Source: Lytechinus pictus (Eukaryota). From it: a DNA stretch of 64,000 nucleotides. A program made the translations under genes and the position numbers. Of the stretch, positions 4,201 through 61,600 are shown one piece after another (within the stretch, counting starts at the first letter, position 1; the number at the start of each line of letters is the position of its first letter). The stretch is from the NCBI RefSeq assembly GCF_037042905.1, contig NC_087249.1:12772001-12836000 (forward strand), given 5' to 3'. The notes under the pieces are model-generated. The model was not told the DNA's origin, searched no databases, and saw only the letters and a list, made by a program, of their open reading frames with translations.

Positions 4201-5751
4201 TCCCCATTTATTTTCTTGTATTTATTATATGATATTATATTGATTAATATTTTGGCCTCAAATATAAAAATAGAATTGACTACTGACTTTTGTAAGGTAA
4301 TCATTGCTACAACTTATTTTCTAAAACACATCTATGAAAATATCAAATAGATAATTATGATTTTATTTATGCATAAGAAAAATGGAAGAAGGGATATGGC
4401 ATCATCAGCCCACCTATCACATATTCATGGCGGCATACATACAACTGTTTTCACAAATTATTGCTAAACTCTATAGAATTAAATAACTTTTATTTCTCAT
4501 CAAATTTTGTTAAATTTTGTTGTTTTGCCAATTGATATTTTTCTATTCAGGGGCAGCAGAACAGGGGGGGGGGCCTTCAGCACGAGCATCCACTTTTTTT
4601 CTTTCCAAAAACGTTTACATAAAAATAAAATTTACCATCTGATTATGAATTTGCATGGTCAGCCCCCTTCCCCATATCAAGGCCGTTCTGCGGCCCCTGC
4701 TAATTATTCACTATCATTAGGCTATATATATGTTCAGCATAGAGATCCTATCACTTTCATTATTTGTTCACAAGTGACATCACACATCTTTGTCGCATTG
4801 CCAATTTGAGGATCTCCATAGCATTGGTGATCGCAATATTCAAATGCTTATAACTTTCTCATTATTTGTCCGATTTTTCTCAAACCTTTTTTGATCTGTT
4901 TCTTTGATTTTTCTGTTTTCACACAATCTATCTTGTTCCAAAGGTTTCATTCTCCTTTAACATTTTAAACAGCGTTTTTACAGTGTTTAAAGCAAGTTAG
5001 TGTGCATTCCATAACATTAGCATTACAAATCATTATTATAAAGAGGAATAATCATGCTTTCAAATGATACCATATTCACATATATGATGGCATACTAAGA
5101 AATTTAACCCTTCAAAGTTGAGTTGCAGAAGTCTTTTTAGGGGTTCATTTATGTATACAAATTTGATAACCAAATCATTAATTCATACTCTAACTGCTCG
5201 TTTTTAATAATTCCTTTTGCATATTTTTATATAGATATTTGAATTTATTCCCTTGTGTTCTTCAGTTTTCATTTCTAATTTCTTAACTCATTGACTTATT
5301 CATGCATTTAGTTATCAATGTGTTTACTTATTTAGGCATTATTGTTATGTCTAGCCGTAGATTGATGAGTCTATGGCTTTATCCGATTATAAGTAAAAAC
5401 CTAGTTTAAAACATATATGAAACAGTAGCCTTAATAGCACCACTTAGAGTTCTCAACAACTCAAATGTGGCCAGGTTCTGAACCTACAATGCAACAGTGT
5501 AGTCTTGAAACATGGGCCAACTGGAATGAAACACACCAATTCACTAGTCAATACATTCACACCATAAGAATCGTAATACCTAAATAGCAAAACAAGTACT
5601 TTTCATCTCAATTTTTTTATCTAAGCAAACAAATAGGCTAATTTATTCTCTATTATCAATAATTATCTATAAAGGTATATTTAAAGATTTCATTTCACAA
5701 TGTCGAACACCTTATACTTAGTGTGTTGTTGAGCCTCTTCTTTCACCTCGC

Positions 5752-6095
5752 GTGAAATCTCGTACCATCACACACCTCATGCGATATCTCGTACCATCAC
5801 ACACCTCACACGAAATCTTGTACCATCACACACCTCATGCGATATCTTGTACCATCACACACCTCATGCGATATCTTGTACCATCACACACCTCATGCGA
5901 TATCTTGTACCATCACACACCTCATGCGATATCTCGTACCATCACACACCTCATGCGATATCTCGTACCATCACACACCTCATGCGATATCTCGTACCAT
6001 CACACACCTCATGCGATATCTCGTACCATCTCACACCTCATGCGAAATCTCGTAACATCACACACCTCATGCAAAATCTTTTACCATCGCACTCA
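5752..6095. repeat. 29-bp minisatellite (ATCTCGTACCATCACACACCTCATGCGAT), about 11 copies
   Basis: Directly visible; produces the three overlapping repetitive ORFs. Confidence 0.95.
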
Positions 6096-6347
6096 TGCCT
6101 ATTCGCTATTTGTATACTGTCACACTCATGCCTATTTGTATAATATAGCACACAGTCTAGGAGAGACCATAAACAATGTTAGTTTGCTCTGCCTTTAATC
6201 TGAGTAAGCCTACATTACCCATCACAGGCTAAACAAAACATTTCATAAGAGCTTTACATAGTTGATGTATTAAATTCAAATAATATCCCTAGATATATAA
6301 ACAAAATGTGCTTAAATATATTAATAACTTAGTATGAAATCGTCCAG

Positions 6348-6529
6348 GAGGCCATTTCATAAAGCTGATCGTAAGCTAAGAGCAACTTTAAGAACGACTG
6401 GTGATCCTTTCTTGTGGTAAATGGTATTGAACATTAAATGTTCATTGGTGAATATTTAGAGGGTAAGAAAGGATCACCAGTCATTCTTAAAGTCGCTCTT
6501 AACTTACAAACAGCTTTATGAAACACCCA
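6348..6529. mobile_element. Fold-back MITE, PIF/Harbinger-like
   Basis: Long inverted arms TTTCATAAAGCTG...CAGCTTTATGAAA; related copies at ~7828-8107 and ~61607-61743. Confidence 0.7.
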
Positions 6530-6832
6530 CCAGTTAATTATATATATGTGATCAGCCACCCAAAAACCAACAATAAGATTGCCAGGAAAGGCTCTCAGTA
6601 ATTTCTGTAATCCTCTGTAATGTTTTAAATAAAAATAAAAAATCATGCAGATAATATATTTTCATCGGCCATCCAAACAGAAGAAAGTTTTTAAGAATCT
6701 CAAAATTTATCCTATGTAAAACACGTTTTCATTTCATATCCTCCACATCACATCTCTTGAATACAAATTTTGGAGGATTTACGAAAGCTAAAGCCAGTGT
6801 TTCAGAGCACTAATATTGTGAGAAAATGTTCA

Positions 6833-7045
6833 GGGGGGTGTTTCACAAAGATTTAAGTGTGACTTAAAGTCATGCTTAGTGCTGATGCGCACATGATTAC
6901 ATAACAAGCAAACTTGTTGATTAATACACAGTAACACACGTCATCTTAGTATAATTGGACCAATGCGGTGATGCCTCTTATTCTGCTCGCAACCGGACAT
7001 TTAAGTGTAACTTTAAGATACACTAACTCTTTGTGACACACCCCC
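6833..7045. mobile_element. MITE with GGGGTGTTTCACAAAG termini
   Basis: TIRs GGGGTGTTTCACAAAGA / TCTTTGTGACACACCCC. Confidence 0.65.
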
Positions 7046-7277
7046 AAGAAGCATTATCTATTCAAGTGATTTGTAAGGTTAGAGTCAAAGAACTCTAAAG
7101 TAATAAATCACAAATCAAAGGCATGCATGCTGTCAGATTGTATAAGTAACATAAACCTGAATACAAAGAGAATGACATAGTAGTGGTAATAAATGGCAAG
7201 AATAGCTTTATGATTTCCACTATGAACTATCGTTACTTGTACATATCCTTCTACATCAGGGGGCATTTCAAAGAGTA

Positions 7278-7692
7278 AAGGACAACGCACACCTTACGAC
7301 CCGACTGGCCTACGAGTGGTATGCGACTGAGTGAGGGGAGATGAATTCCAAGAGGTAGTCACAAGCCTTGACACCTTGCAATCCGACAACCCTGCTATCA
7401 GCGACTCACGCAAGCGCTTTTTGCCATAGCTGAGAAAATGATGCTTACTACTGCGTATGCGCGTTGCATATCATGTACGTGTCGGTATTTAAGTGAGACT
7501 CTGCATCTGATTGGCTGGAAGTTGGATTGAGCTTGCGATCCAGTTGTAAGGATTCAACATGTCAAATCCTTACGATTTTCCTTGCAGTTTGTCTCTGACC
7601 GGTCTGCGATTCTCAAGCTGACAAGAGCTGTGACGTCACATTTCCCTTCACTCAGTCACAGACCAGTTAAGTCGTAAAGTGTGCGGTGGCCA
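7278..7692. mobile_element. MITE with CGCACACCTTACGAC termini
   Basis: Inverted ends; a related element with the same termini lies at ~57244-57660. Confidence 0.65.
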
Positions 7693-7827
7693 CTGACTAT
7701 TTGTTATAAGCTACTGAAATCCTTGCATATGATTGGCTCAGAGCAAATTTAAAAGTGAAACCATTGGTAGGAAATGCTTTATGACACACTCCCAGGCATG
7801 AGATACAGACGTAATGAACCAGCGAAT

Positions 7828-8107
7828 GTTTCATAAAGCTGTTCGTAAAAATATGCATGACTAGAATAGATAATGTTCTTCAGTGCTTTCTACTTAGGAA
7901 TATCATTTACCTCAACAAAAAGTCACCTGGGGCCTGTAACACAAAGCTTGGCAATGATCATACAACATTTTACTAGGATTGATTGCATTGACAACAATGT
8001 AAAATCAATCATGAAAATCGAACATACAATTAATCGCTAACCTTTGTGTCATGGGACCCAGTCGTGCGTAAAGTAATTCCTAACTTGTAAACAGCTTTAT
8101 GAAACAT
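7828..8107. mobile_element. Nested MITEs: GGGCCTGTAACACAAAG element (~7930-8058) inside a TTTCATAAAGCTG element
   Basis: Inner TIRs flanked by CTG/CAG; another inner-family copy at ~47594-47724. Confidence 0.65.
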
Positions 8108-20508: not shown

Positions 20509-22589
20509 CCCAGCCCCAGCTAGCTCGGCCCTGTAAATTCAGTCGTACGGGGGTACAGCCCAAGGCAAGCTAGCGGGCGAGAAGTGGAGCATTCGCCGGT
20601 CAGTTCCCCTTACACTCAGTACCGTACACGTCATCGATCCGCAGACCGAGTGATTGATCCACGGCACTGAACAGGTACGAGTTTATGATGAAATTACCTT
20701 ATTACAGTAGTTCTTTCTACTGTGGTACAACAGCACAAAATTGGTGCCCACAAATTGAAAAATATAATAAATTACTTTTTAAATGAATATTCTTAGCATA
20801 AATGTATTTACATACCCTTTTTCTTAGTGCTTTTCTCTGGTTTTTGGTCACCGAAAGACGTCGGGCGTCTCAAAATATTATAACGATAACGCCCTCTACA
20901 GCTTTCTGTTGAAAAAAAAACGTTAATAGCTTGTCACTGCATGATACTATTCAATAACCAGCATAGCATGATAGAGATATGCATATAACTGAACTAATTC
21001 ATACTTGCGAAATGAGCCAAAAATTTTGAGGGTGCCAGATTTGGCGTATCGGGCAAAATCTATAAAAAGTTGCGAGCAAGCGACCGAAAAAGAAATGACA
21101 TTTTTTTACTACATAAATCAAAATTTTTGGATTTTTTTTTTTTTTTTTTTTTTTTTTTGGGGGGGGGGGGGGGGGAGGGCGTTAAGAGCCCCCCATCTGT
21201 ACGCCACTGTTTAATTTTGGACAGTAGTATGTGTTTTCAATGCTTTCAGTGAATGATTAAGGAAGACCTTCACATTTGCCAGAACTTCTTCTTATTAATG
21301 TTGTAAAGTTGATAGCTTAAAACTATTAGGCCTATATGAATTTCTGAAAAAATATGCTCTATTTTTTCTGCTTTTCTATAAAATGTAAATCCTTACATTT
21401 TATTGTTTTGTATCTGATTTATATGACCTTGAATCATCTTTGAATGGAATGGAGTACATGCACACTCTAAAACAATTTTAGAACCTTTAAGGTGAAAGAA
21501 GCAGAAAGTGTTCTAAACAAAGGTTGTTTAGCCTCTTCTACGATGAACCCGTTTAAGGTTATATGAGGTTCTTGATGGTGTAAAGAGCACTGATAAATTT
21601 TGCCAGGGCTGTTAACACCATCATGAACCCAGGTTGTATAACCTTAAGGGATTCCTTAATGTAGAACAAAAAAAAACAGTCAAGCTAATCTTAAAGCGAC
21701 CCCGCACCTTCTTATCTCGTATAGAAAAACAACTTTATTTGGATTGTTCAATTTTTGTTATGTAGTATGCATTTTCTTTGTTAATTATGTATTATGAAAA
21801 GTTGCAGAAACAATGAAAACAAATGAAAAAAAACAAGATTCTAATTAAAGGACTATTAAGAACCCCTTTCTGATTTTTTGGAAGAATCTTAATAAATTCC
21901 AAATATGGGACAAACCAAACTGAAAAGTGCAACGTTGTGTTACTCAACTCACCCTTTTTCCGGATCTCCCTCTCACACCTCTTTCATCCGACTACTACAG
22001 GCTAGCTCCCAATATTGTCCACATACACCCTTTCTCTCCCCCTCTCTCTTATCCTTCCCACCTTTCATTCATTACTATCTCTCTTTCGTCCATCTCCCTA
22101 TCACTCTTCCCATCGACCCTCTTTCTTTCCTTTTATATTTCTCAGTGTATCACAATTTCCGCTCACCTCTTTCGTTTGTAAACTCTCTCTCTTAACTCTC
22201 ATTTCAATCTCTTTCCATCTCTTTCCATTTCTTTCCAATCTCCCCCTCCGTNNNNNNNNNNNNNNNNNNNNNNNNNNNNNNNNNNNNNNNNNNNNNNNNN
22301 NNNNNNNNNNNNNNNNNNNNNNNNNNNNNNNNNNNNNNNNNNNNNNNNNNNNNNNNNNNNNNNNNNNNNNNNNNNNNNNNNNNNNNNNNNNNNNNNNNNN
22401 NNNNNNNNNNNNNNNNNNNNNNNNNNNNNNNNNNNNNNNNNNNNNNNNNNNNNNNNNNNTCTATGACTTTAACCTCACCTCTCTCCTCTCTCTTAATCCC
22501 TCTCATAAAATATTTTGTCCTATCTTTCACCTTTTCACTTGATGTAATGAAGACAGACATAATCAACATGAAATATATTATATATACAT

Positions 22590-23572
22590 AATATTTAATC
22601 AATCTCTTGTAGAAACCAGCCGTACCTGACGGACATACAAAATCTTATATGTAATCTTTTCATTAATCATTGTCATCATTTCAACAAATTCAGATATAAT
22701 GCAAAGCTTTATACAACTAAAAAAAAAATTGATGTGCAAAAATCTTGTCAAAATTATGTATGTTCTTAACCAGCCGTCCCAGACGGAATTTTACACGAAC
22801 ATTGAAATATACGAAACATTGGAAACTAATCAATCGACAAAAAATCTCCTAAGATAGAGTTGAAATAATCATCTAAAAATGCAATATTTCTGATTGAATT
22901 TCATACGTTTTCCCAGAAATCACTTCAAACCATAAAAACAATACTTGATTTCAACGGACCATCCCAGACGGGTGTTTTTTTTTTTTACATTAACATCAAT
23001 ATATATAAAACATTTGCAATTATTCAAAGGACGGAATTTTCTAAAACTATAGTATACAAAAAATCATTATAAAACATGTTCAATTTCCGAACCAAAATAA
23101 ACTTTCATTATTTGGTATTTAGCATATTATGAGCAAAATTCCGAATGAAAAAAAAACAACAACCAGAGTTTATAATGAGTTTTAACAATCAAACAAAATA
23201 AAACATTGATATTCTTACCCCGATTCTTACCTACTATATTTTTGGGGTGCATATCGTTCATTGTCATGTATATAATCACACGATTACCCAAATATATTTC
23301 ATTTCACAATGATATTATGGCATTGTTGATAAGTAGGGCAAAATTCAAGTTTCTAGATTTTTATAAGCTTGTCAATACAAGAGAAAAAAATTGCAACAAA
23401 TAAATTATAAGCACAAACGCAGACTCTGTCTCTACAAGTTACACACAAAAAACAGAAAATAAGCGATAGCTGGACATATTTTCGTTTCATCAGCCTCCAC
23501 TTCGATCACGTAGACACACCATAGGTTATTATCGTAATCACCGGGATAGTTTGGTGATGCTAATGAACCTTG
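22590..23572 (-). pseudogene. Truncated fourth SpAN/BP10 paralog: 84-bp CUB2 exon fragment fused to a copy of the paralog A 3' region
   Basis: 23572-23489 encodes [28 protein letters not shown] (cf. gene A ~26458-26375). 23490-22590 aligns with the gene A downstream sequence ~25367-24470. Confidence 0.85.
22620..22971 (-). promoter_or_regulatory. Three SRE-like hairpins in the remnant paralog 3' region
   Basis: CCGT-CTGGG-ATGG (22971-22959, G-U pair), CCGT-CTGGG-ACGG (22786-22774), CCGT-CAGGT-ACGG (22632-22620); ATTAAA at 22599-22594. Confidence 0.6.
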
Positions 23573-23679: not shown

Positions 23680-24498
23680 GGGGGCACGTGCCCTCCGTAG
23701 TTACGCCACTGTCAGACACATTTTTGATAACTTTTTCAAACTCTTTTTGTATGGGCCTACATGTATACTACTTCTACCCCCACCCATTTTGAACATATAT
23801 ATTTCCTGCGTTTTGTTTGTCTGAGTATATCTGCTCAAATATATTATATTTAGCTTGAAATATTCCTTTAATGCGAATACAAAGTGCTGAAAATGACTGA
23901 TAAAGACCTCCTGACATGAAAAGGTCACATTTCAAACATTATTCGTTTGAATTCAGGACTGGGATACATATCATGCTAGTCAAATAATGCGGAACCCCCT
24001 GATAATGAGCCTGCTCCCATTTCCTCCCTATTTCTGTTTTTTTTTTGTTCACATACTTCCCTCCCCTCTCTCTCCCTTTGTTTGTCCCTTTTTTCTCCCT
24101 CTTCTTCGCTTTCTTTGTCTCCACTCTTCTCCATTTTCTCACATCTTTATCTTTCATTCTCTCCTCCTCTCGTCTTCCCGGCTTCCTTTCAGATTTCTCT
24201 TTCTTCATCTCCCCTCCTCCACTTTTTCTCTCATCGTTGTCTTTCCTCCCCCTCTTTCTCTCCTTTCTACCCCTTCTCTCATATCTTAATACATATATTT
24301 CTGCTTTCTTTCTTTCCTTTTCTGTCTGTCTTTCTTTCTTTCTTTCTTTCATCTTCCCCTTGTTTATCATATTGCTAATATAGTACAATCGTTATTTCCA
24401 TTATCCATCCAATCACTAATATAGGGCAATGAATAAAAACATGTATTCGAAATATATTATGTTTTTATAAAGTTTAATTCATCTCTTCTAGAAACCAG

Positions 24499-24876
24499 CC
24501 GTACCTGACGGAAAATCACATTATCATAATAGTTACATCATAATTATCATAGATTCAGTCATTCAGATACAATATAAACCTTTTTAATTCAAAATCAAAT
24601 TGAATCGATCAAACTGAATTTTATACGTTTTCACTAAAATCATTAATTTCAAAATTAGTGATTGTTTTCGGCCAGCCGTCTCAGACGGATTTTTTTCCTA
24701 GAACATTGAAACATGCAAAACATTCAAAATTAATAAAATGGCAGAACATTCTTCTAACTTTGAGTTAAAATATTAAATAACATGTAACATTTTCTACTTA
24801 CATTTCGTACATTTTCACTAAAATCATTCCAAAACTTTTTTCAAGGTGATTATTTTCAACCAGCCGTTCCAGACGG
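24499..24876 (-). promoter_or_regulatory. Three Smaug-recognition-element-like hairpins in the putative 3' UTR of gene A
   Basis: Sense strand CCGT-CTGGA-ACGG (24876-24864), CCGT-CTGAG-ACGG (24688-24676, loop variant), CCGT-CAGGT-ACGG (24511-24499); ATTAAA at 24478-24473 just downstream. Confidence 0.65.
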
Positions 24877-47400: not shown

Positions 47401-48160
47401 TCTGCGATTAAACAAGTGATTGACAAGAGTAGAATAATCTCTCTCTGCCGAATAAGTAAAATGAATGATTCATTTTTTTTTTCATCCACTTTTGTACAGT
47501 GAAAATTATAATGGTATTTTACGGATTGTGTGTATTATAAAACTGCGTTCATTGTTCATCTATCTTGGTTTAAGCAAATGAGAGGGTACATCAGGGGCCC
47601 GTAAAACAAAGCTTAGCAATAATCGTAGAACATTTTTCTACGATTGATTCCATTGACTAACATGTACAATCAATCGTGAAGATAAAGCGTACGATTAATC
47701 GATAACATTTGTGTTACGGGTCCCGGGTGTCAAAGAGAAGGTGGAATCAATTCCATGCTCTTTGTCTGCAAAAATTGATTCATATCATTAGTCAAAATAC
47801 GTTATACTAAAAAAGATTATTGGAAATGGAATGCTCTTTTTACAATCCGGTCAATTTACGATATTATCCATGTTTTTTAAATCAAATTTTGTACAAAATA
47901 GATGTTTTTATCAGCAAAAGGTGTTTTGCGTCAATATACTCTCTCCAAACAATTCATGAAGGTCTAATCCCAAATGTCAAAAATTAATATATTTATTAAT
48001 TTTTTTCTTTGTTTATTTATTCTTCTCCAGAATGTGTGGTTCTGAGTATCCAGCCGCTTCTTTGGTGTCAATCGGTAGCAGGATGGAACTTACCCTGAAG
48101 ACAGATGGGTCTGTTAGGGATAGAGGCTTTTTGGCGAGATACCGTGCAATCGATCTCTGA
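41429..48160 (+). CDS. SPAN: SpAN-like astacin metalloprotease, paralog B (closest of the three to SpAN), 602 aa
   Basis: Exons 41429-41518, 42789-43044, 43562-43767, 44693-44896, 45175-45531, 46025-46590, 48031-48160 (1809 nt, GT-AG). Motifs [54 protein letters not shown], two CUBs with a long Thr-rich linker. Symbol rests on recalled similarity to SpAN; orthology needs a tree. Confidence 0.9.
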
Positions 48161-51100
48161 TTCGACGATCGAATAACTAAAGAACTCCTTCAATTAAAAA
48201 TCAAGTTCAAGATTGGATTTTAATACCACCATGACCACTGTAGTCTACACGATGCGATCAAAGTCGCCCTTGTTATAGGTTCATTTTCTCAAACAAAAAG
48301 TTGAATTGACTATCACTTTATGATACCAAAATCATTTTTACCGGCGTCTAGTTTAAATACTTATTGGTAACTCAGGCCATTTGTCATTTTTTGTCTGAAA
48401 TTCAATGAAATTCTTCATGATTATAATGAATTTTTACGATTCGGAACCTGTCCATAAAATTGTGCATGATTGTTTTTTTTTCGAAACGTGGGACCTTTTT
48501 TCAATGTGCTGGTAGGCGACTGTGGGCAAGGTGGGAATTAAATATACTTTCTGTACAACCATAAGGCTTATATAAGGGCAATTCCATTAAATAATCAACC
48601 TTTTTGTACGTCGTCCGACCCCCATTTTTCTCAAGTCTTACTTCACTTTATAAACTGACCAAGTCATGGTCCCTTGAGAACATTACTGACTGTCAAAAGA
48701 ACAAGAAATCAGAGACAGAAAATTTCAGGAAGGCCCCACATATAGGGGATTGGACGTACATATTTTATGGAATTGCCCATAAGCTATTTCTTTGCCAATC
48801 AAGAATTTGTCTGGTATTTTAATGTCTATATGTTTCTTATTCATCTCTAACATGGACATGGGACCCGTTTAATGAAGACGTAGAACAATGGTAGCTTTGT
48901 CACTATGGCAACTAACATGGTAACATGACCCTACAGTCAACGAAAATAAAAGTTTTTAATAGTTACCATAATTACAAAATGACAATAGCCGTACATCTTT
49001 ATGAAACGGGGCCCCCAGAGACATATTTTAATGCTTATTGTATTGTATATATTATGTAAATGCGCTATTTATTAACAAAAAATTGTGACATTTTGGAATA
49101 AAAATGAATACAACTAAATATTACGGTGATCCTTTATAATCATTGAATTGTTTGTAATGATGGAGGGGTTTGGGAATGAGGGAGAGAGCGACGGAGATGA
49201 AGAGGGAGGGAGAGAGAGTGTGCATAAGAGGGAGAGAAGAAGAGAGAGAGAGAGGGGGAGGGGGAGGGGGATGGAGAGAAAGTGATGGTGTGAGAATAAA
49301 CAAGAATTCTATAAAATAGTCGAAACCTTTGAAAACGGAAAGTGAAACGGACTTAATCATGAGAAAGTATTTTTTGTTCATTTCAGAAGGACTTTGTGCA
49401 CCATTCCAGATTTTTTTTGGGGGGGTGAAAAAAAATCAATAAAGAGAGTAGGTAAAATACAAACTGAAAATACATGTAGAAAATGTGAGCATAAAAGGGT
49501 GCCGTAAAGAATAAGACATGGTAAAAGTAAATGTCTGTTATATTATTAAAAAAATAAGAAGAAAGAACACTGGTTCAATTAAAAAGATAAGAAAAGATAA
49601 ACTTAAGAAATAAGAAATTCACTTAGGTGTCCAGCTGATCTAAACTCACTTTTTGATTAAGTAAACAAGTGTAATGTGAATGAATCACAGAGGTTTATGG
49701 GAGGCTTATCAAATGATGTGAGACGAAGCAATACGAATCCTTATAAGGAGTGGTAAATAAATTCACTCAAGACGTTTTCACCCTTCAATGCATCTAAAGA
49801 TCCGGCATCAACATTCCGTTTTCGTAAAGGGTTTGTCACAACTGACGAGATAACAAATATAAAAATAAATCGAGGCTTATAATAATTTGACATAAATCTG
49901 CATGTATCTAAATCAAGTAATTCAGGAAGTAATCAACAAAAAAGACAAAACAACAAATATTAACTTATTAATGTTAATTTAAAATAATTATCTGTCACAC
50001 TTTTTTTTTGTTGGGGGTGGGGGAAATCGTGTTTTTTAAACATTAATAGACGAAAATCGTAAAAAAAATTCTCAAGATCTTTTTTTTTTGTGCGTTAAAT
50101 CCATAGACTTCACTTGTTTATTATTGGTGCCCCCATTATTTTTCAGAAAAGTCGGGGTTATAAAGAAATAATATTTCATATAAAAGTTATTCGTGTTGCA
50201 AGCAAAAGAAAAAGAAAAAAAGGTGTTGGACATATAAATGTAAATTTTAATTCATTAGGTGATAATGTCGGGACAATGTCATGAATTTTCGGAATCTGGC
50301 CACTTCCCTTTTGTTAGTGATACGTGTGGTATGGCGAAAGGAAACAGAGACCAGTGCTAAATTTGCGCAAAAATTGTTTTTAGTAAGTTTTGCATATCAA
50401 AACAAGAAATTTGAAATCATACGTTGCAAACACAGCGTACCACCAGAGTTCCTTAATTCTAGCTACTTTTCAGGGTAGGCTCCATGGTTATGTCGAAATA
50501 CAAACATGCAACATCTTGACTTAATCATACATTTGTAGCTTCGATAACAAGACACTATCTATATTATATTGTAATATAAGCAATCCATTCATTTTTAATG
50601 GAAACAAAATACGAGTATCATTCAAGACTATAAGCGACAAGGTGACTAAAATCGTGACGTCATAAAATCGTATACGTCACAGTCTCACATGCTCATCAGG
50701 TATTAGATATTCAGTAGGTAAACCGAATCAATCGAAGGGTATGAATACACTGCATTACGTAATGTTTGTACCCCCTTGTCAAGCTTGTATTCTTGGGGAA
50801 AGAGACCCAAGAATGATGTCATGCTTGAATATTTACATTTGTTTTATTGAACAAAATGGAGCCATAAAAGAATTGTGTAATTAAAATTCAAAGGCAAGTC
50901 CACCCCAACAAAATATTGATTTGAAATTCAACAAGCATAACAATGAAAATTTCATCAACATCGGGAGTAAAATAAGAAAGTCATGACATTTTAAGGGTTC
51001 GCCTAATTTCGCAAAAAAATTATATGCACATCCTGATCGGTGAGGGTACAGATAACATTACCTACTCACTATTTATTTTGCATTTTATGATGTGAAATAT

Positions 51101-55500: not shown

Positions 55501-56846
55501 TCAACAAATAGTTTATCTATTCCAATTTTACAATATACTGTATATTTTATAAAACATTTAGCGTTTTACAGCTTATTGAGAAATCTTACTATCAACTCCA
55601 AATGATTTGTTCATCGTTCAAAATATGACTTAGCATTTATGAATAAAGTATGTTCTACAGAATTATAAGAATATTATAATATTATTATTTTTTCTTCTTT
55701 ACTTATCATTTAAACAGGGAGTTGCAGGAAGTACGATTGAACTGACATTCGTCGACATGGACATCGAAAACGAGAACCTCTGTCGCTACGACTCCGTCGA
55801 GGTTCGCAAAGACGATATCAACGCCATCGGAGAGAAGTTCTGTGGAAGCACCTTACCTCCTGTCCAGATCTCTAGTAGCAACCAGATGTTGGTTTCTTTC
55901 ACATCTGATTACAGCATCACTGGGCGTGGTTTCAAAGCTACTTACGTCATCCAGGGTGTTCCTACGACTGAGGCACCAACTACCACCCCTGAAACAACTA
56001 CTAATCCTCCTGTAGTCGGAACATGTGGAGGAAGCTTTGATGACAACCAAGGTTCATTAGCATCACCAAACTATCCCGAAAATTACAGTTGTAATCTTCG
56101 GTGTGTCTACGTGATCGAAGTGGAGGCTGATCGTCGGGTTGAGCTGACATTCGCAGATTTCTCGCTGGAGAATCAGAGTACCTGCCGATGGGACGCACTG
56201 GAGATCGATCTCGGAGATGGTGTCAAAGTTCCTATGAAGTAAGTCTAACAGCAGTATTTTATTTAAACCCTCTAAAACAGCATGCCATGTATTTAAAAGA
56301 ATAAAAAATATCTCATGACACAAAGAATGTTTCGTTTTAAAGATCCGATGAGATAAAAGAAAGTGTTAATGGATGATTTCAAGTTCAGCGTTGACCTTTT
56401 GGTGTTGGTGTTATGCTCGCTGTGTAAAATAATGATCATTATTTTACACAGCGAGCATAACACCAAACGTAACACGAAGACGGTCCTGAAAAGTCATTCA
56501 CTAGTCGTTGAGGTGTCAATAATGTGATCTGGACCAGTTTTACAAACTCAGAATAGGTTTTGGAGCTGGAGGAAGCAATTCAAATTGAGTTTCCAACACC
56601 AACACCGGACATAAATCACCTAATGTGTTTGTTGTTTGACCAGTCTTAACTTTTCACCACGAACGAATAAATAATGTTTCTTCTTCTCCTCTTTTCTCTT
56701 TACCTTTTCTCTCCAGGATGTGTGGAAGTGAGTATCCAGCCGCTTCTCTGGTGTCAATCGGTAACAGGATGGAACTGACACTGAATACAGATGGATCTGT
56801 CACCGATCGGGGCTTTTTGGCGAGATATCGCGCAATTGAACTGTAA
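52579..56846 (+). CDS. SpAN/BP10-like astacin metalloprotease, paralog C, 578 aa
   Basis: Exons 52579-52665, 53533-53770, 54056-54261, 54488-54691, 55069-55419, 55718-56238, 56717-56846 (1737 nt, GT-AG). Same domain order, with [12 protein letters not shown] and SVMHY; exons 2-6 nearly identical to paralog A. Confidence 0.93.
52880..53150. mobile_element. Harbinger-like MITE in gene C intron 1
   Basis: GGCCCCGTCTTACAAAGAG...CTCTTTGTAAGATGGGCC with CAG/CTG-like flanks. Confidence 0.75.
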
Positions 56847-57984
56847 GACTATACCTTGCCTGTAAACAAGAAACAAGAAAGTTGTACTGCATTGACATTA
56901 ATAATGTTGGCCATCCAAGACTAGACATCTCCTAAAGGCGACATGAACGTTAAGATTTTCCCTTGATTTTGAAGATGTTAAAGTTGGTGTGACGGTTGCA
57001 TGACATTTGCTCCGACGACAATTGCTCCGAAGGAAAATCTGCACATTAAGTCAAACATAAAACCTTACTTTTAAAACTACATGTAAATAAACCCTAATCA
57101 TTATCTTTACATTATTCTGAACCAAAAAAGACTATCACAATCCTAGCTCTAACCCTATACCCTCTGAGATATTCATACCGGAGCAATTGTCACAGGAACA
57201 AATGTCGTGTCAACGGTGTGACACCGAGTGAGGTATACATCTAAAGGTGACCGCACACCTTGCGATCGGTCTGCGACCCGATTTTGGAATAACACGTAGT
57301 ATAATTTGATGCTAATATTGAGACATGGAATATCTTACTGTGTAATGTTCGAAATCGTTGTACGATTACATATGTTCAAATCTGTGAATATGCTATCATC
57401 CTTCTTAGAATAAAAACAAATTTAATATCTAGTCGCAATGACGTCATAGCAGTCGTACGATTGGCTACGATTTGAAACTAAATTGGCCTTTACTCCAAAA
57501 TAAAGGCTTGCAATCTTTCAAAATGATTATAATAGTATTCTTTCAATTAATTTCAATTGTAATGAAATGATATGTTCCATTCATATTCTCAGAAAATTAG
57601 CAAAATGCGATTTGTTCCAAAATCGGATCGCGAGCAGTCGTAAGGTGTGCGGTGGCCTTAACAGAGTTATAAGTCTTTCCTGTGTATCATCACGAATCAA
57701 GAAAATTACGCAGTAAAGAAAAAAATGATGAATGCTAAAATCATAGCCAAACAACTTTGCATTATGTCTACAAGCGTGACAAGTTTAACTTTTAAATACG
57801 CGATAAATATTCAACATTTTTTACTCTTTGTTTTGTTCAATACAAAGGAATTTGGTGCTTGATATTTCCCTCTATTGTTGTATTTAAATTCTCCTTCATA
57901 TTTTTTATAATAATAGCAAAGCCAATGATATGTTGCAATAAAATGCCAAAAATGATATACTGTATTATTAATAAGAAACATAAA

Positions 57985-58638
57985 CCGGCTGGTACGGCGG
58001 GAAAAGATACAGATGAAATATTGATACCTTTTATCTATTTATATTTTTATCATGCGCATATTAACTTATATGTTATATATTTGCAATATACTTGTAACTC
58101 ATAAGTATAGTCATACCACTGCTATGATTATTAGAAAGTTATTATACTTATTACATATACAACATATCGGATATTTTTCGTTTTTTTTATTTTAGAATTA
58201 TTTTAATTGTATGAATTCACTTCCACAATGTTTTGATAAACATAAAGGTTAATGTGAATAATACGACGGCTAGCTAAGCACTTCTGTCATTTCGACATGC
58301 GACCATTAAACAGGAACAAAAGTATTTATATAATTCGAACGTCTAAAAATAAAATTTTAATGCGCTGTAATTTGCCAATCAAAGGAGGATTGACTAAAAT
58401 GACCTAATTTTAATCATAATTAGGTCATTTTGTGTTTGACGCATCTCCGAAAAGTGCTCAAAATTGACCACACATCTGGAATGTTTTCTAATTTTTGTCG
58501 GACACAGTCATATTCACCACTACATTGATAACGTTTAGGATATTATTTATTTATGATAAAGTAAGATGATCTTTGTTGTTGTAAATGATGATGTGTTTTC
58601 CGTCTGGTACGGCTGGATAAGACACGCATAAAATAAAA
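57985..58638 (+). promoter_or_regulatory. SRE-like hairpins and poly(A) signal in the putative 3' UTR of gene C
   Basis: CCGG-CTGGT-ACGG (57985-57997, closing mismatch), ACAT-CTGGA-ATGT (58472-58484), CCGT-CTGGT-ACGG (58600-58612); AATAAA at ~58632-58637. Confidence 0.6.
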
Positions 58639-61600
58639 TACTTATATTATCAAAATCATGCGTTTGTTCCCATTTTGAATTGTGTGATAAAAAGAAATAT
58701 GCGGGGGGTATAAGATAAATAAAAAAAATAGATGAAAAGGAGAGGGGAAGAGAGAGAAGGGTGGGAAGAGAGTTGAAATGATAGACAATTTAAAAGTAGG
58801 GGGATAGATAGAAAGAGAGAAGAGATAAAGAGGGGGAGAGGGAGAGAAGGGTGTGAGGAGAGTTGAAATGATGGATAATTTAAAAGTAGAGGGGGATAGA
58901 AAGAGAGAGAGAGAGAGAAAGATAGAAGAGATAAAGGAGGAGAGAGAGAAGGGTGTGAGGAGAGTTGAAATGATAGAGAAAAGTGGAGAGAGTGAAAAAA
59001 GTAAGAGAAAGAAAGAGAAAATGTGAGATAAATAGAAACAAAAGAAAATTGACAAGTTTAACACAAATATTAAAATATGATTTATTCCACCTAAATCCAC
59101 CAAAGCTTCCAACTGTTTTATATTTTACAAAATAATGAAATGATAATTGACCAAAATAAACAAGTAAAGGGGGAGATTTTTTTACCATTAATGATAATGA
59201 TCATAATAATGATCATTATTACGAAAAGTCGAAACAATAGTGAAATTATCATATTTATGATGATGATTATTGCCATTTGCACTACTTAAACTAAAGGTAA
59301 ATTAATCAAACTATAATTTTTTACTGCTCGATTGCTTTTCTCTCTCAAATTCTTATTTCCGTCAGAATATAATGATTTCGCACTTTTATCAATAATTGTA
59401 AATATGTTATCTCATGAAATTAGGTTTAAAATTGAAAAAAGGAAGATCTGTTGCAAAACTACGGGGGAGCACGGAGGCACGTGCCCCCAATCTGCTGGCA
59501 AAAAAATCCGAGGAAAAAGGGGAAAAGAGAGAAACGGAACGAGAGACATAGATGAAAAAGCAAAAAAGGATATATTAGAAAGAATATATATTTTTTAATT
59601 GCAATAAGTATTTATTCATGTTGGTTTCAAATATGTAATAGAAACGCTACATTTTACGATTTGTACTAATTTTTTAAGGCTAAATTTCATGCTATCTGTA
59701 TGAGTTTTGTACTTTTGTTGGAAACAAGTGGTTATTCTTCGCCGCTTTCGGTCTTAATACAAAAAAGATTAAGCTCGCACTTCGCATCATATTTTTGGAT
59801 TAGTGAAATACGTATTTTCTTTATGAATTCCTACAGAGGGTCCTTAGAATGTTACCTTTTCAGGTCTCAATATCCAACATTTTCCAGCTCGCGCTTCCTG
59901 TTTGCAATACTTGATTCGTGAGATAGGAATCATGTTCATGATTAAAAAAAAGTGTAAAAAAATTTCCTGTTTTAGGTCTAAATGTAAAAAAAAAAAAAAA
60001 AAAAAAAACGAGCTCGCGCTTTGGCGCTCGCATGAGATTCTTATGCTAAGATATATATGCTCTGCATGAATTCCTAAAAAGAATCCCCTTTTCATGTCAA
60101 TAATTTCAGCTCATGCTTCGCGCTCACATGGTTTGATTGAGAGACATTAATGTTTTTCGTGAATTCCTAAAAACATGTCCTCAAAATGTTAATTTTTCGG
60201 ATCAATATAAATGAAAATTCTAGCTGGCGCTGGCATTGTTTGCTTAATAAGAAACGTAGCGGGTGTTCAAAGATTTGCATAATTATGAGGTCCCGTTATC
60301 AGGTCTGAACCTAAAAAAATCAGTTCGCGCTTCGCGACCACGTTATTTGATTAGTGAGATAGTGTTCTTTCCATGAATTTCTACCAACAGCCCTTCTTTT
60401 CAGGTCACTTACCTCGCGCGCTCAATAAATGATTCAAATTTTGCTTTTGCTCCCCAATGATGTGACCCACGATACGCCAGTGATTACAAATATAATTTAC
60501 CTTTCGAGATCCTGTGCATGTAAGGATTTCAGATTTGAAAGCGCAAAAGAGAAAGAGAAAATTGTCATATTTTGGGTACATATTTCAATCCAATTCAATT
60601 CTTTCATTCCATTTCCATTCAAAACATAATACAAAGTAATATAAAGTAATACAAATCAAATACAATTTTACAGACGAGCATTCTTACTTAATAAAACAAA
60701 ACAAAAAACATTATAATATTGAGCATAAATGGAAATGAGGGGGGTTCACTAAAAAGCAAAGCTTTTTAAGTGTGGATACCCATTGGAAATAAAGAAAATA
60801 TAATCGACTTATTCATATATGCGTTCATATACAGGAAAGAAAAAAGAGAAGGAACAAAAAGGTCGAAATCATATTGATGTAAGCGTAATTACAGAACAAG
60901 TGCAAAGTTATTCACACAAAGAGGCCTTCGCTGTTAAGGATATGTTGCGCAATAGACAGAAGAAAAAGCAGAGAGAGAGAGATAGGAAATGACAAGACAT
61001 AGAAGACAAGACAAAAGAAGAGACAGGACAGTACAAGACATGATAACATAATAAGTAACAAAAAATTAAAAGGAGGAAAAGTCAGAACGGGGAAGGGCTG
61101 ACCACAAACCGTCTGTAGTATGGATGTGTCCATAAATGCGTTTCTATCATGATTTCAGGATTTCATGAATTCGTTCTAAGAAAAAAAAATAATGGTCGAC
61201 CATGAAGAATGGGTCAGCATTTACCTCCCCAAAATATAAGAAAATAAAATATATAGAAAATTATGGCTATGTGGGCGGATCATTTGCTTTTAGACGGGTT
61301 GGTCGTCCACGCTTTTTAGCGCCGCTTTGGGTGTACCCATTTGTCTCTACAATTTTAGAATTTTCTCTAGTTTTGTTACTTTGCTCCCGTAGATGAATAT
61401 CTCGTTTTATGATCTTGGCTTTCTTTTAAGTAGGCTTTTCTAAAGGGATTGAACATTTGAAAGGTAATAGTACAATTGTTTAAATTTTGCTCGCTATCGC
61501 AAGTTTTGGTCCTTTCTTGCTAACTGCGACCCACAAAACGAGATCTGTGGATCGGTAGGCCAGCAGCCTTTGCAGAAGTTGAATACTATCTGGAATATAG

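Follow-up and report, generated by a model that had tools for sequence, protein, structure and literature searches.

The window analysed here, a stretch of 64,000 nucleotides (nt) from the sea urchin Lytechinus pictus (contig NC_087249.1, positions 12,772,001 to 12,836,000), contains a tandem cluster of SpAN/BP10-type astacin proteases: genes A, B and C lie within it, and gene D lies just outside. Gene C's 3' untranslated region (UTR), like that of several of its relatives, carries a 17-nt element with the consensus CCGU-C-N-G-R-N-ACGG-CUGG, in which the arms CCGU and ACGG can pair around a loop of five bases and are followed by an unpaired CUGG. Judged from the 35 copies aligned, it is the exact letters of this element that are conserved, and not merely its shape. 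An earlier note on this DNA had described gene C as keeping a group of hairpins with CNGGN loops, one of them on a different stem. We find that gene C has one working copy of the element, and no set of structure-selected hairpins. The positions of the features are collected in Table 1.

Table 1 Features of the cluster, with positions counted from the first base of the window
Feature	Position	Strand	Remarks
Gene A	last exon 25628-25476	-	protein P0152
Gene B	last exon ends near 48160	+	protein P0156
Gene C	last exon ends at 56846	+	protein P0248
Gene D	just outside window		protein P0244
Last coding exon, gene C	56717-56846	+	end of second CUB domain; stop TAA 56844-56846
3'UTR, gene C	56847-58655	+	about 1.81 kb; from contig tiling
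MITE 1 in 3'UTR (about 220 bp)	56994-57215	+	inverted arms 56999-57029 and 57179-57209
MITE 2 in 3'UTR (about 420 bp)	57240-57660	+	terminal inverted repeats of about 50 nt, 57244-57292 and 57612-57659
Degraded copy, gene C	57985-58001	+	CCGGCTGGTACGGCGGG; CCGG-CUGGU-ACGG + CGGG; 2 mismatches
ACAT-CTGGA-ATGT	58472-58484	+	generic CNGGN hairpin candidate, 4 paired bases
Intact terminal copy, gene C	58600-58616	+	CCGU-CUGGU-ACGG + CUGG; T at 58599
Poly(A) signal AATAAA	58632-58637	+	15 nt after the 17-nt element
Purine-rich (GA) microsatellite	58700-59040	+	just past poly(A) site; not covered by gene C RNA
Gene A reference array	24495-24876	-	H1 24860-24876 (CUGGA), H2 24672-24688 (CUGAG), H3 24495-24511 (CAGGU), ATTAAA 16 nt later
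Copies in duplicated gene A 3'UTR segment	22616-22971	-	22955-22971 (degenerate, stem G.U), 22770-22786 (CUGGG), 22616-22632 (CAGGU, then ATTAAA)

Copies and conservation of the element

A search of the window with the 17-mer at up to three mismatches gives seven matches, against 0.02 expected; two are in the 3' region of gene C, and five are downstream of gene A on the minus strand. The terminal gene C copy is intact. As the earlier note stated, TCCGTCTGGTACGGCTGG at 58599-58616 matches the gene A motif, including its CTGG flank, with no mismatch. In its upstream flank, GATGTGTTTT, this copy matches genes A and D and the Strongylocentrotus purpuratus genes at their terminal (H3) block, and the copy itself lies within the RNA contigs 58341-58655 (run X1), 57635-58651 (X15) and 58496-58633 (X7, an oligo-dT library). 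The description of the gene C 3' region as otherwise unalignable to gene A also holds, since the two align solely at 58585-58616 against 24527-24495 (91% over 33 nt).

The other gene C copy, at 57985, has lost the loop-closing U-A pair (G is opposite A), and its CUGG flank is changed. A C>A change at 57986, present in all the RNA contigs of two studies, breaks the stem further. The downstream flank A(A/T)AAGA(T/C)AC is common to this copy, the 58600 copy and H1 of S. purpuratus. The 57985 copy looks like a decaying duplicate.

The hairpin on a different stem, ACAT-CTGGA-ATGT at 58472, is present with its four base pairs, but occurs at chance level. Perfect 4-bp CNGGN hairpins number nine in the window against 3.5 expected from shuffles; five of the nine belong to the CCGT/ACGG family, and the remaining four, to which 58472 belongs, are thus not beyond chance. 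The predicted pair probability of this hairpin in its context is 0.00, and the local folding that the earlier note had called for gives z=+0.42 relative to shuffles and picks another helix. The surrounding 576 nt (58020-58595) are single-copy in the L. pictus genome. In a search for an orthologue of the gene C distal UTR, the L. variegatus gene of protein P0251 (L057), whose N-terminus is like that of gene C, had a last exon and 3' end of the A/D type. Given its chance frequency, its single-copy surroundings and the lack of a predicted fold, the 58472 hairpin was rejected as a member of the conserved element, and it is judged to be a chance occurrence outside the element system.

Across the 812 Mb L. 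pictus genome, CCGTCNGRNACGGCTGG has eight exact matches, all of them in this cluster, and a reversed control has none at zero mismatches. With one mismatch allowed, matches elsewhere are about as frequent as those of the reversed control; of the two best, both attributed to chance on inspection, one lies in a coding exon and the other in unrelated GC-rich sequence. The S. purpuratus genes of proteins P0234 and P0236 have three copies each, in the 3'UTR or downstream flank. These two genes, which belong to the S. purpuratus SpAN cluster, keep the order seen in gene A, namely H1 with a CNGGN loop, H2 with CUGAG and H3 with CAGGU, followed by the poly(A) signal. There are two copies in L. variegatus, six in Diadema antillarum (three genes with two each), and one to three in each of the metatranscriptome and Logan transcripts L008, L009, L010, L016, L017 and L018. 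The hairpin is present in related urchins; its absence there would, according to the earlier note, have refuted the proposal. When the UTRs of L. pictus are aligned with those of S. purpuratus, runs of identity amid otherwise poorly alignable sequence mark the elements.

In a protein tree, carriers of the motif occur in both major clades of the SpAN/BP10 family, which implies that the element predates the split between diadematoid and camarodont urchins. Published time trees place this split on the order of 200 million years ago or more. The 17-mer was not found in the BP10-like gene of the starfish Patiria or in the distant S. purpuratus paralogue P0166, nor at L. pictus gene B, the classical S. 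purpuratus SpAN copy P0154, or the transcript L011. As read from these sequences, gene B and one of the S. purpuratus SpAN copies have lost the motif. In L011, the 3'UTR of an urchin BP10-like transcript (P0159), about nine tandem units of about 60 nt at L011:2150-2700 replace the 17-mer, each with a possible AAAATC...GATTTT hairpin around ATACTTCTGTTAGC.

Altogether 37 copies were collected from L. pictus, L. variegatus, S. purpuratus, Diadema antillarum and metatranscriptome urchins, of which 35 were aligned. In the CCGU/ACGG stem 99.2% of the cells of the alignment are paired, with no compensatory change, two G.U changes and one break. The break is the gene C copy at 57985; working copies depart from the stem letters only by two C>U changes, each of which leaves a G.U pair. 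The unpaired CUGG on the 3' side hardly varies. Variation is found at loop position 2 (U, A and once C), position 4 (G, with A in seven copies) and position 5, as well as in the outer flanks; 30 of the 37 loops fit CNGGN, and the other seven are CYGAG. Covariation was looked for in the aligned copies, both for the simple hairpin and for an alternative helix, and none was found. The lack of compensatory change, together with the conservation of an unpaired CUGG, indicates that the primary sequence is what is kept. The earlier note had proposed the opposite, that selection acts on structure and loop rather than on primary sequence, and had named covarying stems in orthologous UTRs as a check; the alignment does not support that proposal.

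The gene C transcript and its neighbours

Four RNA runs were placed on positions 55600-58800, and the end of the gene C mRNA was taken from contig ends in two L. pictus studies, together with zero depth downstream. A GT..AG joint, 56238>56717, is found in contigs from two separate L. pictus studies. These spliced contigs extend to 57113, beyond both the stop codon and the nearby AATAAA at about 57086. Others cover 57124-57332, 57327-57400, 57502-57628, 57635-58276, 58247-58339 and 58341-58655. In run X15 a single contig of 1,018 nt covers 57635-58651, at a depth of 66.7 compared to 64.7 for the last-exon contig, and the oligo-dT metatranscriptome (X7) contains 58052-58364 and 58496-58633. Gene C RNA thus reads through the AATAAA-like sites near 57086 and 57408. 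The contigs, which give neither strand nor exact cleavage site, stop at 58651-58655, 14-18 nt past the terminal AATAAA, and RNA depth is zero from 58703. The 3'UTR of about 1.8 kb is real, as the earlier note had claimed, and the contigs stop at neither of the two earlier sites; an mRNA end there would, according to that note, have refuted its claim. In run X1 depth drops from 1086 to 350 along the 3'UTR, and there may be minor use of earlier poly(A) sites. In the raw RNA run X19 gene C is barely expressed.

About 640 nt of this UTR are shown to be two insertions of miniature inverted-repeat transposable elements (MITEs), in agreement with the lengthening proposed earlier for about 56990-57660. 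Both inserts are short and non-coding, with terminal inverted repeats and dispersed copies, and RNA passes through both. Each has at least 2,400 candidates in the genome: 2,427 at first look for MITE 1, of which 39 other copies were scored and are 82-88% identical, on many chromosomes, and 2,493 for MITE 2, whose full-length copies are 91-97% identical. The last intron of gene C also contains a perfect 62-nt palindrome (56405-56466), at which multi-copy RNA and contig depth are very high (5,000-8,000), and which is probably another small inverted-repeat transposon. A GA microsatellite follows within about 50-150 nt of the poly(A) site in every paralogue (also at 49160-49290, at 24360-24060 and 22500-22020 on the minus strand, and at L006:1740-2040).

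The proteins of genes A to D have the astacin-EGF-CUB-CUB architecture of the SpAN/BP10 family. The open frames of gene A are identical to P0152 ('blastula protease 10-like', 593 residues) and contain the astacin zinc motif HExxHxxGFxHEQxRxDRD, an EGF domain and two C-terminal CUB domains; precomputed Pfam matches to Astacin and CUB support the assignment. The C-terminal end of P0156 ('SpAN-like') matches gene B, the end of P0244 matches gene D, and the C-terminal end of P0248 ('blastula protease 10-like') matches the last exon of gene C. Gene C has the same domains as the known blastula proteases, in a tandem cluster as in S. purpuratus, and its protein has no unusual features.

Over about 3 kb, introns included, genes A and C share 83-95% identity, and their alignment ends in the last intron and 3' region. 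Gene C looks chimeric, in that its last exon (56717-56846) ends like that of gene B (48024-48160). There is a partial duplicate at 23572-22560 on the minus strand, in which an 84-nt fragment of a CUB exon (23572-23489) is fused directly to a second copy of the gene A 3'UTR. This copy has about 70% identity over 980 nt and carries three further motif copies, one of them degenerate. A run of N (an assembly gap or masked stretch) is found at 22251-22459, in the GA-rich region downstream of it. The 3' region of gene B has an inverted-repeat insert at 48540-48790, ATAAGGGCAATTCCAT ... ATGGAATTGCCCATAAG, and no copy of the 17-mer.

Possible functions of the element

The arms of the element are perfectly self-complementary, its free positions are in the loop, and its working stems change only to G.U. 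In addition, its flanks are asymmetric, with an AT-rich 5' side and CUGG on the 3' side, and all copies share the orientation of the gene. These features argue for an RNA hairpin over a linear or symmetric DNA site, and the last two favour an RNA element over a symmetric DNA site. In every gene checked, the terminal copy is close to the poly(A) signal. It lies 16 nt before the poly(A) signal in gene A and in the duplicated gene A segment, 21 nt in gene D, 15 nt in gene C and in S. purpuratus, and 17 and 19 nt in Diadema. The interval to ATTAAA or AATAAA is 15-21 nt in all the genes checked except L016, where it is 1 nt; here the hairpin, ATTAAA and a real A10 tail all fall within 30 nt.

On the basis of these observations we favour, with a probability of about one half, a family-private RNA element of combined sequence and shape, which would be read by a putative protein near the poly(A) tail. 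The 17 nt would act in the RNA as a short hairpin, either a stem of 4 bp capped by a pentaloop or one of 5 bp capped by a triloop. The protein would read sequence and shape together, and would need C1 and G3 of the loop as well as the letters of the stem and the unpaired CUGG. Since in no gene checked is the terminal copy more than 21 nt upstream of the poly(A) signal, the most likely output would be control of poly(A)-tail length, and hence of the stability or translation timing of the blastula protease mRNAs. The most concrete candidate for the reader is a SAM domain of the Smaug/SAMD4 type, which would recruit a deadenylase; this is a tentative suggestion, and even within the explanation favoured here it is less likely than not. 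It is doubtful that a dedicated reader (or a two-state RNA switch) serves only SpAN/BP10 mRNAs, with letters held since before the diadematoid/camarodont split.

Several observations count against this explanation or the reader proposed for it. The predicted pair probability of the hairpin ranges from 0.00 to 0.98 among copies, and is 0.00 for the gene C copy at 58600 (with 80 nt on either side, at 15-37 C). An alternative helix, in which CCGUC pairs with GGC(U)GG, is 95.8% compatible with the 35 copies. The CYGAG loops fail to match CNGG, yet L. pictus, S. purpuratus, Diadema and the L016 lineage all keep them, and the loop is preceded by U, where G is preferred. For a factor as general as SAMD4, a motif private to one gene family would not be needed, and the motif is dispensable in at least some members of the family, since neither gene B nor the classical SpAN copy of S. 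purpuratus has it. The stems of published Smaug recognition elements (SREs) are non-specific, and the SAM domain makes no contact with the 3' side (PMC4053848), so that invariant stem letters and a CUGG flank are not explained by an SRE.

Of the alternatives, the one that survives best is an auxiliary element for 3'-end processing, in which the terminal hairpin would enhance cleavage and polyadenylation at weak or competing signals, and so secure the correct poly(A) site in an AT-rich UTR with many hexamer look-alikes. This would fit the position of the terminal copy, 1-21 nt upstream of ATTAAA or AATAAA in every checked gene, and the behaviour of gene C, which ignores the sites near 57086 and 57408 and ends only past the element. 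However, H1 and H2 are equally conserved though they are 130-900 nt from the poly(A) site, and the known upstream elements of 3'-end processing are U-rich or UGUA, not GC hairpins. We consider this explanation unlikely.

The element could also be a plain SRE, with selection on a stem and a CNGGN loop, the stem letters being free and the 58472 hairpin a second working copy. A CNGGN loop in 30 of 37 copies, the occurrence of several copies per UTR, their location in the 3'UTR and the perfectly paired 4 bp of the 58472 hairpin would all be expected. Free stem letters are difficult to reconcile with zero compensatory changes in 35 copies from urchin orders that separated long ago, as is a simple loop requirement with the conservation of the CUGG flank and of the CYGAG variants. 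The 58472 hairpin, for its part, is at chance frequency (4 against 3.5), with a pair probability of 0.00 and no homologue. A plain SRE is thus improbable.

A two-state RNA switch would explain the frozen letters in another way: CCGUC would have two possible partners, (G)ACGG and GGC(U)GG, the sequence would be fixed because both pairings must be preserved, and a factor or condition would shift the balance. The alternative helix is 95.8% paired over the 35 copies, and several minimum-energy folds of H3 use it. Moreover the predicted bulge, the U of CUGG, is the most variable position of the flank, and the C>U change at the next position keeps a G.U pair. Neither helix shows covariation, however, and the alternative contains wobble pairs and a bulge, so that its compatibility may be a by-product of GG-rich sequence. 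We regard such a switch as very unlikely.

We think it highly unlikely that there is no RNA function at all, the motif being a DNA-level site (for factor binding, or as a tract of gene conversion) or the remnant of a repeat in slow decay. It is true that the paralogues exchange sequence, genes A and C being 83-95% identical over 3 kb, and that gene B and one SpAN copy dispense with the motif. Against this, the motif is identical between species that are unable to exchange sequence and whose flanks are unalignable, its conservation is asymmetric and strand-fixed, and it is not a dispersed repeat.

The weakest alternative, a target site for a small RNA instead of a protein-bound hairpin, can be set aside almost entirely. 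The final 8 nt of spu-miR-133 (CCAGCCGT) form an exact reverse complement to the invariant ACGGCTGG (for example at 24860-24867 on the minus strand), the match to miR-133 extends to 10-13 nt in copies followed by TT(GAA), with 13 nt at H1 of gene A, and UCCGUC matches positions 3-8 of miR-184, but there is no miR-133 seed match downstream, the leading U is A in several copies, miR-133 is a muscle microRNA, and the invariant loop C and G and the self-complementarity would be unexplained. The acorn-worm form of miR-133 carries CCAGCTGT.

Comparison with known systems

The genes for SpAN, BP10 and their relatives are classic examples of expression in the very early blastula: their messages come and go within a narrow window, and their control has been studied mainly at the promoter. 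A repeated element beside the poly(A) signal, fixed in sequence among very distant urchins, suggests that control of the blastula proteases also has an unstudied post-transcriptional layer, and the 17 nt provide both a handle for direct tests by mRNA injection and a bait for the reader protein. An Rfam scan of the gene C and gene A 3' regions gave only chance matches below the gathering threshold, and neither a SpAN/BP10 3'UTR element nor Smaug function in urchins is described in the literature searched. What is new here is the structure of the gene C transcript, the intact or decayed state of its two copies, and the exclusion of the hairpin on a different stem. The value of the gene C finding is mainly corrective, in that it has a single working copy and a long UTR that is real and inflated by MITEs.

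Among known systems the urchin element comes closest to the SRE, to which the SAM domains of Smaug, Vts1p and SAMD4 bind, and of which it is a candidate member. An SRE has a loop CNGGN0-3 on a non-specific stem, and a loop of 5 nt and the sequence CUGG perform best (PMC4053848). The loop of the gene C copy at 58600, CUGGU, starts with CNGG and has this length. The urchin element resembles an SRE in being a 3'UTR hairpin with an invariant loop C1 and G3, in having the pentaloop and CUGG as its commonest form, in the several copies per mRNA, and in being carried by embryonic mRNAs. It differs in its invariant stem letters and 3' CUGG, whereas SAM contacts only the loop and the 5' stem of an SRE (PMC4053848), and in having a conserved CYGAG (triloop) variant, a U before the loop and a restriction to one gene family. 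The 99.2% pairing of the stem would suit an SRE, but stem letters that never vary would not be expected of one.

In its triloop form (CCGUC-YGA-GACGG or CCGUC-NGG-GACGG) the urchin element is also reminiscent of the constitutive decay element (CDE) recognised by Roquin, and like it could recruit decay machinery from the 3'UTR. The triloops of CDEs are pyrimidine-purine-pyrimidine on U-rich stems, whereas the third loop base of the urchin element is a purine and its stem is GC-rich.

The best analogy for the pattern of conservation is the 3' stem-loop of histone mRNAs, in which stem letters, loop and flanks are all conserved and the stem-loop binding protein (SLBP) reads sequence and shape together. 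Both are short hairpins near the 3' end of an mRNA. The urchin element differs in sequence and is present in several copies per UTR. Its mRNAs are polyadenylated, as seen from the oligo-dT library and the A-tail of L016, and it lies upstream of the poly(A) signal rather than replacing it. If a dedicated reader does serve only the SpAN/BP10 mRNAs, the element would belong to a private post-transcriptional circuit that times the burst of blastula proteases, with a logic like that of the histone stem-loop and SLBP.

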